Shown one piece after another: positions 1,347-64,000 of a stretch of DNA of 64,000 nt (its first letter is position 1; the number at the start of each line of letters is the position of its first letter). Made by a program: the position numbers and the translations under genes. Source of the stretch: Orbicella franksi (taxonomy: Eukaryota); NCBI GenBank assembly GCA_964199315.1, contig OZ116712.1:3596001-3660000 (forward strand), given 5' to 3'. The notes beneath the pieces are model-generated. The model had not been told where the DNA came from and ran no database searches. It was given only the letters and a program-made list of their open reading frames with translations.

Positions 1347-2288
1347 CTAGTTGTCTTTGCAGAGTATTATTTTAACTAATCTTTTAATTTCATTTCGGAT
1401 ATCGTTCATTCTCCACAAGTAAAGAAATGGATTAAGTGAAGAAGACAAAAATACAATCATTAAAGATAGATCAAGTAATGACGACGTCAGAGACTTGTAC
1501 TCACTTCCCAAAGCTACCGACACCGCAAAGATTATAAAAATGGGGGAGTAACTAACATAAAAAATCGCTAAGATATATAGGACGGTGTGCACAGATTTTC
1601 TGTACTTAGCAACGTTGATCGTTGGTTGAGCAGAGGGTCGAGATAAACAGTTGAGTTGAATCTGCTGCTGATGATTTCGGATTATTCGAAAAACTTTAAC
1701 GTAAGCTGTTGAGGTAACAATAACGCAAGCCAATAGGAATGACATGGAAGCGATCTCTGTTCCAGGTTCGTTATTGAAAACGGACAGTACGCGACATATT
1801 GGAGACGGTAGTATGATGAGATAAAGTACTGCCAGTGTAGAGTAGACGCGAGGCACTGTAAGCAGAGAACGTCGGGTCATATGCAGCCAACGTTCGATGG
1901 ACATTAATGTAATGATGGAAGTCGTCATGGGAATAAAGTACGTTGCAGACCCGCTGGCGATTGCTACTACTGTTGGGTTAACAGGCGAACCTGATAGGTT
2001 CATTAACTCCATCGCAGCGTAAAATGGCTGAGATATGAGTCCTGTGCCGAAGTCAGTAAAAGCCAAGCCTGCGAGCAGAATGTAAGATGGTGTTCGGAGA
2101 GACGGATTCCTCCAAATTGCCGCCAAAACCAGAGCATTTCCGACCACTGCTACTGGCGATAAAATAGCCATAGCAATGGAAGCTGACCAACTTATCACGA
2201 TGTAAGAAGAAAAACTGTGGATTTTCTCGTCATTTTCGAAGTTGGATCTGTTAGAGTAGCAGACACAGGCCGTTGTGTCATTGCACAT
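1347..2288 (-). CDS. Class A GPCR, cluster member 1 (313 aa, single coding exon)
   Basis: 7 hydrophobic segments; GN in TM1, LAFTD in TM2, SIERW in TM3, SYSP in TM6, LNPFLY in TM7; N-terminal N-glycosylation sequons. Confidence 0.95.
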   Translation of the reverse strand: MCNDTTACVCYSNRSNFENDEKIHSFSSYIVISWSASIAMAILSPVAVVGNALVLAAIWRNPSLRTPSYILLAGLAFTDFGTGLISQPFYAAMELMNLSGSPVNPTVVAIASGSATYFIPMTTSIITLMSIERWLHMTRRSLLTVPRVYSTLAVLYLIILPSPICRVLSVFNNEPGTEIASMSFLLACVIVTSTAYVKVFRIIRNHQQQIQLNCLSRPSAQPTINVAKYRKSVHTVLYILAIFYVSYSPIFIIFAVSVALGSEYKSLTSSLLDLSLMIVFLSSSLNPFLYLWRMNDIRNEIKRLVKIILCKDN

Positions 2289-2308
2289 GGCTACCTTTTT
2301 GCTATGAT

Positions 2309-2490
2309 AAAAGGAAGAGAGGCCGTCCCAAATCCACCAGGAGGAGGACTGCAGAGGATTAACCTCAGGGTGTAAACCTTAACTGGGAGCAAGCTGCAGG
2401 GCTTGTAAAGGACTGACAGGAATGGAGAAAGTTTGATAATGTCCTATGCGCTACTTGGCGTTTAAAGAACTGATGATGATAACGATGATA
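2309..2490 (+). mobile_element. 5'-truncated RTE-type non-LTR retrotransposon 3' end
   Basis: Translates as KRKRGRPKSTRRRTAED*PQGVNLNWEQAAGLVKD*QEWRKFDNVLCATWRLKN*, resembling the RTE ORF C-terminus, followed by a (TGA)n-like tail. Confidence 0.8.
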
Positions 2491-2582
2491 CTGAACTCTC
2501 TCGTATGATACGACTTTCGGCTGCCTTACCAGAGGAAAACTATCTCAGACTTCTCGCTAAACGTCTGCAAACGAATAGTTGA

Positions 2583-2839
2583 ATGTACCGATCATGGGCA
2601 AGGTTCATATTAAATTTCTCTTTCTTTTGTGATTACATATTTGCCTATAAAAGGATGAAAACAATATCCCTGAAATTAATTTCTACTAATGCATTTTGAG
2701 AGCTTCCGTAGTTGGAGACCTGTTTTATGTTGGATTTCAATTAAGTCAAAATATGAACCTTTTATAATTGAACAATTAACATCGGTCGGTAAACAACGCA
2801 AAAATAGAAATGAACATTTGTCATTTGTGCATGTACTTA
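2583..2839. repeat. Diverged ~250-bp direct repeat, copy 2
   Basis: Colinear with 574-822. Confidence 0.85.
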
Positions 2840-60125: not shown

Positions 60126-60369
60126 GTAGTATGATTTTCAGTGAACGATGTCAACGATTCCACTTCTTAGTTAGACTGAGGGCAGTCCTATGTACAAGGG
60201 GTCTTTGTTATCTTCTAATGCTTTCAACGATCATTCCACAATAATTAATTGAAAGATGGCTTCAAGTGTTATCTGCATGCAGATAGTAATCCATATCCAT
60301 TATTGCCTGTAAAAGGTGTCTTTAAGAAAGGTTTACCTCATTAATTTGGTTATTTACAGCTTCTTAACA

Positions 60370-60635
60370 GTGAGTGAGGTATTTCGGGAAAATCTCGAAC
60401 CGAGACCTTGCCGTATTCAGCGAGCGATAGCGGGGTCGTTACAGCAAGGCCGAGGTTTGAGATTTCCTGTAAAGACCGTACGTTCGAGGTTTATAAGTTG
60501 TTTATTATACGGCTTTTTGCTTTGCTTTTGCAGGCCCGTAATCGGCCCATGTGCATTACGGGAGATAATGCCATAATATTAGCCAATCAGAGCGCGCGTT
60601 ATATCGGCTATAAACAGAAGCCGTATAATAAATAA
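60370..60635. repeat. Interspersed repeat with internal inverted repeats
   Basis: TTATTATACGGCTT / AAGCCGTATAATAA and AAATCTCGAACCGAGACCTTGC / GCAAGGCCGAGGTTTGAGATTT. Confidence 0.6.
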
Positions 60636-63070
60636 AATTACTAACTATTTTAAAGCGTATTTATCCCTTAAATATATATGGCAGGTTAGGATTAGGCCCC
60701 ACTTTGAAAATATTAGCTTTAAGAGTAAAGTCAAGAGAAATGTTGCGTGCATGGCCTCAAAATAATAACAATACAATCTAGAATTGATTCGCTGTTCTAT
60801 CTTGAATACACTAATGCAACAAATAGCCTCAGGTTTTTATCTCTGATTTTTCTGTCGATAGTTAGAAAGTTCTTTGTTTCAAGGGATTTTACTGAAAATA
60901 TATTCCTTTTCTTACTACAAAAACCTTTTCAGCTGTACTGATAAACGACTTCTTTAATTAATATATATTTCATACTCACTGTTGCAACAAAGGGGTCCTC
61001 AGCTCCATTTCTAAATATTGTAGATAGTAAAAATTTCGTTGTTTTCATATCATTTTAATGAGCTTACATCCGTTTGGTAGGTGTAAGAACTCTATTAGCA
61101 ATGCTATTCTTACTCTTCCGCAACCAAACTATGTGCGTTTGAATCTGTAACGATCAGCACCAATAAATTATGTGTGTATGTATAATGGTATTTTTAAGAG
61201 TGTAATATACATGTTAACATTAATGAGACGTCTTGTAACACGATCATTTTTTATTTTCACCCTGTTATAAAAGTGATTACGACTGATCTTAGCCCGATTT
61301 AAACTTCGTTGATCAATCCCCTCTCTATGTGTCCCTTTCCTCACATATCTCAGTTTTTGTGTTACTTTTTAAATATTTCAATTTCCAAAACCAAAATTCA
61401 TAAACAACTAATTTCTCCTGATAATATCAATACATTCTACAGCAGGTACGTGTAGAGAATATAAAACAGCACTAAAAAGGGAATCATCACCTTCGCAGTG
61501 CAAAGATATTTCGATTTTGAAATGTCGCCGTAAGATGTACTGAACCATTTTATGTGATTCGATGTAATATAAATGCAAGAAAATATTTTGTTAGTTCCAT
61601 TTCTTGTAGCAAAGAATAACTATTGCGCTTTTGGAGAGCCTCTCAACTACAATGCATGAACTTGCAAAACTAAATGGAACAATATTTCCCTCTGCAATAC
61701 GGACCTCATGCTAATTTGTCAACATTTAGTTTTTTTAGTATATCGAGAGTCGATGCAACATATAACTTCCAAAATGGCGCTATGTACTCTGATATTTACA
61801 ACTGAAGAGTGAATTAGTACTATCTAATCACGAAGTCACACGTAGAATGTAAGAACGCGTACGTTTTCATGTAGGAATTCCTCCAAAACGTGGATATGAT
61901 CAAGAGGTTTCCCATAGTCACAACAGGCAAAAACAAAGAACAACAATCGAGATGCCTTAAGTAACGTAAGTCGAAACATAACACGATGTAGCCGAATCAG
62001 TTAAGCTTGAAAGAGCAAGAAAGTGGCCACAGGCAAATTATTTAGCATGACAAATATAATGAAGGTTCAATTTTTCTTTCGCGTGCTAGTCTATTTATTT
62101 TCTTTTCGATATTTTGTCGCGTACATTAATTTCTTGCACCTCAACACAACACTCGCTCGCTCAACACAGTGTCATCTGTTCTGCCTTGACAGGGCAAAAG
62201 GCCGCCGGACAGGTTTCTTAATTAACTTTGGTCGAGCTTTGATGCAATATGGTGTTTCCATAGCCCAACTCGAGGGATCTCTCCTGTAGTGAAACTGAGC
62301 AAAAATGGAAAAAGGTTCACTAAAACGCCTTGAAAAACTAAAATTGTTAAATTTTACGCACTTACTTTACGCATTCGCTAAATGGCAACTGTTATCATCA
62401 CCATCACTGGGTACTTAACAGTTCAGAACTCTCTGTTATCCGTTTCCAAAATTAATGACACTACCAAAAGGGTTGTTGTACAATGGCTATCTACGTTTGT
62501 ATCTAAAGATGAACACACTTTATAGTGAATGTATACTTTTTAATGGAACCATTACAACTGTAATGCTAAAAGCATCTATTGAAAGTAGTTTCAAAAACCT
62601 GCGACATTCTTAATTACTTCCACCTTATTTGCTGAGGCAAACGACTTACTTCCAAAAAGTGATTTTAAGACATTTTTCAATACTATGCAAGTAAACTAAC
62701 CAAGTCTATCTGTTTATCGACTGCCGTTCTAAATTAAATTACGTCTTCACTACATGAAGCTTTTTGAAATATCTCAATATAAAAAAATTTAATCAGCTTA
62801 AAACAACACATTTTGCATTCTGTTTATACAAATTACACATATCCTTGGTAAAATTGAAATAAACTGATCCTTATATGGTGCTTGCGTGGGAAGTGCAACA
62901 AATAGCACAAAAGTACTACCAGCTGAGTACACGGACTGCCAGAATATATATTGAGCCCGCCATAAATTATTAAGTATAAGTTGATTACATCCCTAGGGCT
63001 GTTCTTTTAGGGTTTCTCTCACGAAAATTGAATTCTTGTCAAAAGTTTGTGCGGAAAGCCAGCAAAGTCC

Positions 63071-64000
63071 ATGGCAAATTTTACAGCATGCTTCCCATGG
63101 CCACCGCTCAAAACTTACATTGCTTGCAGCGTAGATGACACAGGACGGCTATGTGATCCCTTTGTATGCGCCTTTACTTTCTGGAGTTCAATCATCATTG
63201 TTGTTTTATCACCGGTGGCAGTTGCGGGAAATGCACTTATTCTGGCGGCCATTTGGAAGAAGACTTTTCCGAGAACGCCATTCCATATCCTACTGAGCGG
63301 GTTAGCCTTCACGGATTTGTGTACAGGACTCATCGCCCAGCCTTTCGTTGCTTCAAAAACCCTGGTGTTCTCAGCCAACCCCGGGATAGCCAAGGAGAAG
63401 CCAATGCTCGTACTGACAATAGAAGCCATTGGCGAGGTCAGTGCTACCTATTCTATTGCCGTCACAGTATTTCTTATAACACTGATGTCCGTTGAAAGAT
63501 GGCTGCATATGTCTCGCCGATCCTTGGTTACATCTCGTCGCGGTTATTTCACCGTCACTGCACTGTTACTCATTCCAGTTCCACTTGTTGTCTTACAATA
63601 TTTGGACATTGTAAATGAAAATGATGGACGCGAGTTGATTACTACGATTGTGACAATGATGCTCTTTTGCTACCTTACTACAGCATTCGCCTATTTCAAA
63701 GTCTACCAAGTTATTCGTCGTCACCAACATAACGTCAGAGTAAGCAAACCAGCCTAGAATATTGGTCGACCTGGAATCGACTTGGCAAAATACAAGAGAT
63801 CTGTGGCCACCATATTATATATTCTTTCGTTATTTTCTCTGTGTTTCTTACCTTTTGTTGTCTCTGCTGGAGTGTACATTTCGATAGGCCCCAGTTCAGC
63901 AGTATATGCGGCCAGCAACGTTTCGTTGTCGCTTTTGTTTTTGTCATCTTCACTCAACCCTGGCCTTTACCTCTGGAGAATGAAGGATATTCGATACGGA
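63071..64000 (+). pseudogene. GPCR member 16 with a single in-frame premature TAG (63755-63757); runs off the window end
   Basis: ATG 63071 (MANFTAC); after the TAG the same frame continues NIGRPGIDLAKYKRSV...CFLP...LNPGLYLWRMKDIRYG with no further stop. Confidence 0.88.

Follow-up and report, generated by a model that had tools for sequence, protein, structure and literature searches.

We suggest that the window, the whole 64,000-nucleotide stretch of Orbicella franksi contig OZ116712.1 analyzed here, belongs to an extensive tandem array of intronless class A GPCR genes from a hexacorallian-restricted family, most likely a set of sensors for extracellular chemical cues that have diversified in ligand; the sensor role, which we consider probable, is inferred from organization and evolution alone. 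When the 12 full ORFs were used as tblastn queries, exactly 16 class A (7tm_1) GPCR paralogs were recovered in the window (W1 to W16), of which the first seven lie on the minus strand, the next two on the plus strand, one on the minus, four on the plus, one on the minus and the last on the plus. Twelve consist of one uninterrupted ORF of 309-331 aa, with its ATG and stop codon, and the other four are disabled by a frameshift (W6), a 337 bp deletion (W11), multiple frameshifts (W15) and a nonsense codon (W16). The tblastn and Pfam results thus bear out the original prediction of 16 paralogous GPCR loci in mixed orientation, 12 open and four disabled, with four different types of lesion read in the latter; the likeness in organization to olfactory receptor (OR) clusters that had been noted also stands, the array being tandem, with a single coding exon per gene and many pseudogenes. 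The window array is about a quarter of a cluster that extends over ~247 kb (C15:3.56-3.81 Mb) and holds 65 loci, 30 of them intact and 35 (54%) broken or partial. Many other intronless GPCR arrays are present in the O. franksi genome.

Among the minus-strand loci that open the window, W1 (1347..2288; intact, 313 aa, full ORF, PF00001 E 6e-20) lies in a segment that is duplicated, at 97.8% identity, 25 kb upstream of the window, where the upstream copy of W1 has a stop. The four loci that follow are likewise intact ORFs: W2 (16471..17409; 312 aa from the first ATG), W3 (19860..20813; 317 aa, PF00001 E 3e-12), W4 (22149..23078; 309 aa) and W5 (24251..25195; 314 aa from the first ATG), the last with a partial ortholog of 80% identity in the compared coral. 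W6 (28617..29592) is a pseudogene that tblastn recovers in two parts, one in frame -2 and one in frame -3, and the sequence as read places the frame change near 29300 (TM2/ECL1). W7 (31457..32419; intact ORF, 320 aa) has a syntenic ortholog in the compared coral (86% identity, omega 0.32). Two intact ORFs are found next on the plus strand, W8 (35426..36364; 312 aa from the first ATG) and W9 (38230..39165; 311 aa, PF00001 E 4e-20), the member chosen for modelling, whose homologues in other corals reach 94% identity. W10 (41546..42541, minus strand; intact ORF, 331 aa) has SPLIY in place of NPxxY and an ortholog of 83% identity (omega 0.38). A secreted mosaic gene of PAN-CUB-SRCR type is also embedded within the receptor array.

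Self-blastn delimits two tandem duplicated units on the plus strand, copy 1 (43294..49692) holding W11 and W12, and copy 2 (49935..56882) holding W13 and W14. Three of these genes are intact plus-strand ORFs: W12 (48199..49167; 322 aa, with a PF00001 match), W13 (53006..53947; 313 aa, with a PF00001 match) and W14 (55391..56359; 322 aa). W13 reads NPLIC in place of NPxxY and, like W10, is full length despite the variant motif; its ortholog shows 84% identity (omega 0.25). W11 (46186..46787, plus strand) is identified by tblastn and blastn as a pseudogene with an internal deletion of ~337 bp and a frame change relative to W13. Its two tblastn pieces correspond to W13 residues 1-74 and 188-313, at 96-98% identity and in different frames, and the lost segment to residues 75-187, with blastn breakpoints at 46408/46406 versus 53228/53566. 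An assembly gap, an intergenic run of N at 44610..44795 inside copy 1, lies ~1.4 kb upstream of W11 and ~2 kb from the start of W10; there is no receptor inside it, and the ORFs that span it are X-filled artefacts only. As its flanks are collinear, and in the same orientation, with both the paralogous copy and the orthologous region of the compared coral, the gap breaks no receptor. W15 (59145..60125, minus strand) is a pseudogene whose ORF stops after TM6 at 59319, with remnants of TM7 and helix 8 in two other frames, and W16 (63071..64000, plus strand, with its end ~30 bp past the window) is a pseudogene that would be a complete 320-codon gene save for a single in-frame TAG at 63755-63757. 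The pseudogenes are called from a single assembly, and a defect of one base might be an error or an allele that is still segregating.

All five members tested match PF00001 (7tm_1) over profile positions 1-260 (E 3e-12 to 4e-20), and as their scores of 47-73 bits, relative to a curated cut-off of 30.5 bits, compare with 160-229 bits for other GPCRs of the same genome, the family is a divergent subfamily. The AF2 model of W9 (pLDDT 82.8, pTM 0.81) has seven helices and helix 8, and Foldseek aligns it to solved class A receptors with TM 0.65-0.72 (0.65-0.76 for fold matches overall). Intact receptors are compact, at about 310-330 aa, with a short, glycosylatable N-terminus; the family motifs are MSIERW, KYKKS and SSLNP, with ICL3 of the form HQQQ...KYKKS. 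Across the 30 intact paralogs of the cluster, the microswitches N1.50 (30/30), D2.50 (28/30), E-R-W at 3.49-3.51 (30/30), P6.50 (29/30), N7.49 (29/30), P7.50 (30/30) and Y7.53 (28/30) are retained, and Y5.58 is kept. The toggle position 6.48 is F or Y in 28 of the 30, with no CWxP Trp there, and Cys replaces P5.50 in 28; Cys3.25, which would form the TM3-ECL2 disulfide, is absent among the 30, and ECL2 is only 2-7 residues long. Several accepted class A families likewise lack the CWxP Trp, P5.50 and the Cys3.25-ECL2 disulfide, and class A membership therefore stands. The receptors are class A (rhodopsin-like) GPCRs of a divergent, hexacorallian-restricted orphan family, so that the proposed anthozoan (stony coral) origin and orphan status are both upheld, with no specific affinity to solved or reviewed bilaterian receptors seen in the profile and fold comparisons.

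Two known chemoreceptor assignments were rejected. With the vertebrate OR profile (PF13853, 7tm_4) only W9 passes, at 31.5 bits versus 72.8 for 7tm_1, the other four of the five tested members giving no match, and the OR motifs MAYDRY, KAFSTC and PMLNP are replaced in the family by its own. A place among TAAR or aminergic receptors was discarded on the lack of D3.32, this position being A, G, S, F or V in 30/30 intact paralogs. The likeness to vertebrate OR/TAAR clusters is one of arrangement and pattern: the genes have a single coding exon and sit in mixed-orientation tandem clusters rich in pseudogenes, copies turn over by birth and death, the cytoplasmic face is conserved where the ligand side varies, and ICL1/TM2 carries a motif of L-x-T-P-x-Y type; the two differ in that they are not homologous at the family level and in that the coral paralogs are mostly old and kept as orthologs. 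Another parallel is offered by the sea urchin 'surreal' GPCRs and other echinoderm and lophotrochozoan expansions, summarized as intronless class A clusters that are proposed chemoreceptors mainly by organization and tissue expression (PMC9897584; also PMC11886862, PMC5442662). The surreal GPCRs are alike as an intronless, clustered class A expansion, but belong to a different phylum and have an independent origin, and the coral family is known here from genes and bulk RNA.

When the intact paralogs are compared region by region, the molecular basis for a diversified repertoire can be proposed. Pairwise identity among the 30 is 0.50-0.60 in ICL1-3 and helix 8 versus 0.17-0.27 in the N-terminus and ECL1-3, in agreement with the earlier statement that intracellular parts are conserved and extracellular parts diverge. 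Selection, assessed as dN/dS by region, is not uniform: pooled omega is 0.54 for the outer helix halves and 0.43 for the outer loops, versus 0.22 and 0.25 on the inner side, and amino-acid replacements are in excess on the side that faces the ligand (Fisher odds ratio 2.1, p 3e-7), which changes about twofold faster. Omega is above 1 in no receptor region tested, so the faster change of the outer face may reflect relaxed constraint instead of diversifying selection. We suggest that the paralogs share one transducer through the conserved surface of ERW/ICL2, ICL3 (HQQQ...KYKKS) and helix 8 and, because the divergence is concentrated in the N-terminus, ECL1-3 and the outer helix halves, that they probably differ in the ligands they bind.

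The duplicates are of very different ages. Four pairs had been taken as recent, and this is correct for 11/13 and 12/14 (~97% identical, dS 0.027), both of which belong to one tandem two-gene duplication whose copies are 88-91% identical over the 5' 1.7 kb and 95-99% over the 3' 4.5 kb; it is not correct for W3/W4 (protein identity 65%, dS 0.46) and W5/W6 (identity about 55-65%), whose levels of divergence indicate that they predate the split from the compared coral. Most window paralogs share 40-55% amino-acid identity, with dS saturated. The old paralog lineages each have a syntenic ortholog in other scleractinians (omega 0.25-0.38), every window lineage groups in the phylogenetic tree with its own cross-species orthologs, Oculina included, and Nematostella relatives carry the family signature. 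The repertoire is therefore lineage-specific in the sense of being hexacorallian-restricted but, contrary to a narrower reading of that prediction, is neither young nor species-specific, and its paralogs, most of them old and conserved, make the array less OR-like than had been supposed.

Birth-and-death turnover in the cluster, which had also been predicted, is real, with gains and losses relative to the compared coral. The two-gene unit is doubled in O. franksi and single in the compared coral, and many segmental duplicates of 92-99% identity are found across the cluster. As to losses, the W6 locus, frameshifted in O. franksi, is wholly absent from the syntenic region of the compared coral, where the W8 ortholog is interrupted by an RVT_1 retroelement and an RVT_1 element occupies the place of the W15 body. 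W16 and two 95-97% copies of it elsewhere in the cluster carry three different, independent single nonsense codons. The array grows by local segmental duplication, probably through unequal crossing-over with some gene conversion, and shrinks by frameshift, nonsense mutation, deletion and retroelement insertion, while moderate purifying selection maintains the old paralog lineages, which persist as orthologs in different stony corals.

Transcription is low over the gene bodies, with none over the spacers sampled. W9 and W10 drew no reads in two poly(A) raw-read runs and a depth of 1-3 in a third; metatranscriptome contigs tile the W9 region (38064-39363), with no splice joint reported, and also cover part of W10. 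Near-nil RNA in adult poly(A) libraries is compatible with any weakly expressed gene.

A different role, which we regard as unlikely, is that of an expanded receptor set for the animal's own neuropeptides or peptide hormones, comparable to the hexacorallian-only expansion in Nematostella. The compact build, minimal ECL2, and missing disulfide and P5.50 recall the peptide-binding melanocortin receptors (MC1R to MC5R), which in the structures of MC4R are compact, have a very short ECL2 and lack both the TM3-ECL2 disulfide and P5.50, and which also head both the sequence and the fold matches (MC1R profile E 7e-15; best reviewed fold match TM 0.70-0.76). Identity to them is only 18-22%, however, the coral family has F or Y in place of the CWxP Trp at 6.48, and the profile match is no better than those to adenosine, histamine or adrenergic receptors (4e-14 to 4e-13), with histamine H2, 5-HT1A, beta-1 and CB1 receptors among the close matches; as these alpha-group receptors score nearly as well as MC1R, no specific affinity emerges from the profile and fold comparisons. 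Since melanocortin receptors are vertebrate genes, the likeness is probably one of build and not of family membership. There is a precedent in the hexacorallian-only expansion of >100 class A GPCRs in Nematostella, which includes low-sensitivity QGRFamide, QWamide and PFHamide receptors (Thiel et al. 2024, PMC11087051), and orthologs conserved across corals would suit stable endogenous ligands. Within the files of that study considered here, the signature motifs occur only among all screened GPCRs, in two Nematostella sequences, and are absent from the complete tested-receptor file and from the portions of the tree files examined. A 54% broken fraction with continuing copy turnover would also be unusual for receptors of conserved hormones.

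Improbable, to a greater degree, is a repertoire for sensing microbes, symbionts or non-self that serves innate immunity or symbiosis and is not neuronal and chemosensory. Rapid turnover and outer-face divergence would also suit host-microbe arms races, the PAN-CUB-SRCR type gene sits within the array, and such a role has been proposed for coral-amplified GPCRs (Noel et al., bioRxiv 10.1101/2022.05.17.492263); in that preprint, however, the proposal is pure speculation, omega nowhere exceeds 1 and the receptors carry no immune-type domain. It is very improbable indeed that copy number is largely an assembly artefact (uncollapsed haplotypes or mis-joins at the gap) with pseudogenes as sequencing errors: the gap does lie within one tandem copy, near the point where between-copy identity switches, and two duplicates in the cluster at large share 99.2% identity, but 14 of the 16 window loci are 35-60% different in protein from every other window locus, an independent assembly, that of the compared coral, has the same gene order and orientation between W5 and the W15 region, the duplicated units differ by 1-12% plus the 337 bp deletion, which is above normal allelic variation, and W14 groups with a protein from a separate data source, W12 falling outside.

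Tandem amplification of rhodopsin-like GPCRs in corals has already been published. As reported by Noel et al. ('Pervasive tandem duplications and convergent evolution shape coral genomes'), no domain is more frequent among the orthogroups amplified in corals than the rhodopsin-like GPCR (34/192), mostly as tandem duplicates and with function unknown. The array described here is the same phenomenon in the same host group; beyond a survey made at the level of orthogroups, in the part of the preprint considered here, it adds this family, its 65-locus cluster, the pseudogene load, synteny-resolved gains and losses, and the receptor signature. As a rather doubtful extension, the family may be the coral functional counterpart of an olfactory repertoire, in which each receptor would be expressed in a few sensory cells (for example the aboral sensory cells of the planula, or those of the tentacle ectoderm) and would respond to exogenous cues, among them prey, microbial metabolites or inducers of settlement, the compact and open pocket without a disulfide then being a cnidarian solution for small or lipophilic waterborne ligands.

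An ORF listing and a tblastn search of the whole window with the 12 full-length ORFs recovered 16 related loci (numbered W1 to W16 along the sequence) from 1347 to the window end, in the strand order 7 minus, 2 plus, 1 minus, 4 plus, 1 minus and 1 plus. All five representative members match PF00001 (7tm_1) across all 260 model positions with E-values of 3e-12 to 4e-20, exceeding the curated Pfam cut-off, so these are genuine class A GPCR genes and not chance ORFs. Twelve are open from ATG to stop, each as one exon-sized ORF of 309-331 aa, and four are pseudogenes, each disabled by a different kind of lesion: in W6 the reading frame changes near 29300; W11 has lost ~337 bp, equivalent to residues 75-187 in W13, its twin, and changes frame as well; W15 has a stop after TM6, with remnants of TM7/helix 8 in two other frames; and W16, which ends ~30 bp past the window edge, is complete except for a single TAG at 63755. 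The locus count, the mixed orientation and the division into 12 open and 4 disabled genes given in the original prediction are thus upheld by the ORF listing, tblastn and Pfam.

The array also contains other sequence. Between W1 and W2, exon-sized plus-strand ORFs (7020-15829) match PAN (E 1e-4), CUB (E 2e-19) and two SRCR domains (E 2e-65), and from these domains a non-GPCR mosaic gene, probably with a secreted product, is embedded within the array. A tandem repeat at 10303-12489 (period ~906 bp, ~2.4 copies, 97.6% identity, ~220 bp sub-repeats inside) is probably intronic to this gene; two of the 906-bp units each hold a 128-aa minus-strand ORF, and neither ORF has a Pfam match. Between W5 and W6, a 118-aa ORF on the minus strand (27392-27748) resembles a reverse-transcriptase fragment by eye. 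The sole N run of the window, 44610-44795, precedes W11 by ~1.4 kb and is ~2 kb away from where W10 starts, and the ORFs spanning it are X-filled artefacts only. Its flanks are collinear, in the same orientation, with the paralogous tandem copy at 49935-51292 and 51634-53228, and likewise with the orthologous region in the assembly of another coral (ENA ERZ25878340), so the sequence on either side is best read as continuous. The gap is intergenic and no receptor relies on it; its position and collinear flanks rule out both an interrupted receptor and a mis-join.

When the family was mapped across 290 kb, comprising the window and its flanks, 65 loci were found on contig C15 between 3,561,611 and 3,808,371, a stretch in which the window occupies 3,596,001-3,660,000; 30 of them retain a complete ORF (≥295 aa) and the other 35 are broken or partial. 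Elsewhere in the 497 Mb assembly, contig C3 carries a second cluster at 16.30-16.49 Mb (16297182-16486563), whose 20 or more loci share 36-45% identity with W12; other contigs carry more distant relatives, with distant arrays on C13, C11, C9 and C8. A genome-wide 7tm_1 search (3914 first-look candidates in total; 147 of the 147 scored were over the cut-off) revealed many further arrays of single-ORF GPCRs, which makes such arrays commonplace in this genome. The nearest named proteins are those of two stony corals, Oculina patagonica (71%) and Desmophyllum pertusum, coral assemblies contain matches of up to 94% identity, and array sequence is present in RNA runs labelled 'coral metagenome'. Together, the stony coral proteins and these RNA runs confirm the anthozoan origin that had been proposed.

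Seven helices and helix 8 are present in an AlphaFold model of W9 (pLDDT 82.8), for which 59 family sequences were used. Across the 30 intact paralogs, N1.50, D2.50, E-R-W at 3.49-3.51, Y5.58, K6.30, P6.50 and N-P-x-x-Y are invariant or nearly so, which argues for receptors that would be signalling-competent. In the same set, position 5.50 is Cys, not Pro, and 6.48 is Phe or Tyr, not Trp; Cys3.25 and D3.32 are absent, and ECL2 is 2-7 residues long. N-termini are 19-39 residues in length with 0-4 N-glycosylation sequons. Members of the W7-W14 subgroup, W8 excepted, carry a single Cys in the N-terminus and another where ECL1 begins, and these could form a disulfide. Pairwise identity between paralogs is 0.27 in the N-terminus, 0.17 in ECL1, 0.18 in ECL2 and 0.19 in ECL3, against 0.50-0.60 in ICL1-3 and helix 8, in agreement with the earlier statement that the intracellular parts are conserved while the extracellular parts diverge. 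Regional omega, pooled over nine independent unsaturated pairs, is 0.54 in the outer helix halves and 0.43 in the outer loops, compared with 0.22 in the inner helix halves and 0.25 in the inner loops and helix 8 (outer versus inner, odds ratio 2.1, p 3e-7). The ligand side changes faster; since no region has omega >1, this does not amount to proven positive selection.

The array had been described as olfactory-receptor-like (OR-like), with an organization typical of vertebrate chemoreceptor clusters. The likeness in organization and evolutionary mode stands, but family membership does not: the OR model 7tm_4 passes in only one of the five members, far below 7tm_1, and OR signatures are absent, while TAAR membership is rejected by the absence of amine-receptor signatures, including D3.32. 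A search of the family profile against all solved structures yielded generic class A matches only, with MC1R at the top (E 7e-15), followed by A2B, H2, 5-HT1A, beta-1 and CB1 as far as ~5e-13; the best matches span melanocortin, adenosine, histamine, serotonin, adrenergic and cannabinoid receptors at E 7e-15 to 1e-11. Fold searches of solved and reviewed proteins were likewise generic overall (15-23% identity): Foldseek against the PDB gave generic class A matches (TM 0.65-0.72, 15-22% identity), and MC1R dominates among reviewed proteins (TM 0.70-0.76, ~20% identity). Melanocortin receptors and this family have in common a compact, disulfide-free build with a short ECL2, although this likeness does not show orthology. 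Neither the profile search against solved structures nor the fold searches revealed specific affinity to a known bilaterian receptor, and neighbors in the ESM Atlas were mainly cnidarian 7tm_1 clusters with automatic names, giving no functional lead. Among the sequences listed from the all-GPCR file of Thiel et al. 2024, two from Nematostella carry family motifs (ICL1/TM2, KYK(K/R)S, CY(L/V)P and NP..Y.WR, searched as short motifs and not by alignment), and the same motif search found none in the complete tested-receptor file of that study. From these motifs the family seems to be hexacorallian and orphan. The absence of the motifs from tested Nematostella receptors and the lack of a specific bilaterian affinity in our searches agree with the orphan status originally suggested, and the genes appear to form a divergent, orphan class A family restricted to cnidarians.

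Most pairs in the window have only 40-55% protein identity, with saturated dS (>1.3). W11/W13 and W12/W14 are the sole pairs with ~97% identity (dS 0.027), and were correctly called recent duplicates; the same call fails for W3/W4 (65% protein identity, dS 0.46) and W5/W6 (~55-65%), whose divergence rules out the view that all duplicates are recent. Two loci of the other coral's independent assembly (L024 and L026) are collinear with the window over the W5 to W15 region at ~80-88% nucleotide identity, and the orthologs there of W7, W9, W10, W13 and W12/14 have 83-86% protein identity, dS of 0.20-0.30 and omega of 0.25-0.38. In a maximum-likelihood tree, each of these lineages clusters with its orthologs from other species; the W9 and W10 groups have Oculina proteins as sisters, and a lineage located upstream in the cluster has a Desmophyllum protein as its sister. 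A dispersed paralog of W9 (83%) lies 1.3 Mb off on the minus strand (C15:4936573-4937499) and ~0.84 Mb off in the other coral (L027:10001-10930); this solitary, conserved copy, itself of an intronless gene, may be a retrocopy. The collinear orthologs, the tree and this conserved dispersed copy indicate that the repertoire is old and largely conserved among stony corals. A young, species-specific burst is not borne out, given the orthologs across stony corals and the saturated dS.

Turnover within this old repertoire is nonetheless real, as had been proposed. The tandem two-gene unit that contains W11-W12 and W13-W14 (43294-49692 and 49935-56882) is double here and single in the other coral, and many segmental duplicates, 92-99% identical, occur throughout the wider cluster. 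Losses affect W6, W8, W15 and W16. W6, a frameshifted gene here, has been deleted in the other coral, and W5/W6 arose by a duplication that predates the split between the two; W8 is intact here, but in the other coral an RVT_1 retroelement (L024:7936-9282) interrupts its ortholog; and W15 is broken here, with an RVT_1 retroelement (L026:17477-19171) in its place in the other coral. Genes of the cluster thus appear to be killed repeatedly by retroelements. W16 (C15:3659071-3660030) and two copies at 3696850-3697830 and 3715815-3716800, 95-97% identical, have one nonsense codon each, at different sites (ICL3, TM2 and ECL1), and two further sister copies remain intact; these codons are independent knock-outs following recent duplication. 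The two tandem units are 88-91% identical in the 5' 1.7 kb, equal to their identity with the ortholog, and 95-99% identical over the gene-bearing 3' 4.5 kb, with the switch located just right of the gap at 44610-44795. This suggests either an older duplication homogenized by gene conversion or two superimposed events. Because between-unit identity switches along the unit, the low dS of W12/W14 may date conversion instead of duplication.

RNA reads were mapped to 37000-42999, the 6 kb surrounding W9 and W10. Of the poly(A) raw-read runs, two have zero reads on W9 or W10 and a third has a depth of 1-3. Contigs from a poly(A) metatranscriptome tile 38064-39363 (W9 with short flanks) and part of W10, and none cover the spacers at 37200-37999 and 39400-39999. 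The mapping over 37000-42999 gave no splice joints, at a depth too low to show splicing, strand or transcript ends. At this low depth, the pattern fits weakly transcribed single-exon genes with signal restricted to the gene bodies. Downstream of W10, contig depth at 41000-41200 reaches 338 in one metatranscriptome compared with <25 elsewhere, and all raw reads there fit only partly, with loose ends at 41081-41149; this signal is probably a repeat piece or a transcript piece from another locus.

The observation is therefore confirmed and its interpretation partly supported. Noel et al. (bioRxiv 10.1101/2022.05.17.492263) report that, of the gene-family expansions in coral genomes, the tandem amplification of rhodopsin-like GPCRs is the most prominent, and large cnidarian class A GPCR expansions are known (Thiel et al. 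2024, PMC11087051). Tandem GPCR amplification in corals is thus a published pattern, and by itself this cluster is one further example. The literature searched identifies no GPCR as a cnidarian chemoreceptor, and a putative sensory role for these receptors is a reasonable inference from the organization and evolution of the array. What is new is a well-resolved cluster that provides a defined candidate set for coral chemoreception, well delimited by its 30 intact genes, orthogroups that are clear from coral to coral and a defined variable pocket. This set could be used directly in deorphanization screens and single-cell expression maps, and is relevant to the sensing of prey, microbes, symbionts and settlement cues by corals.
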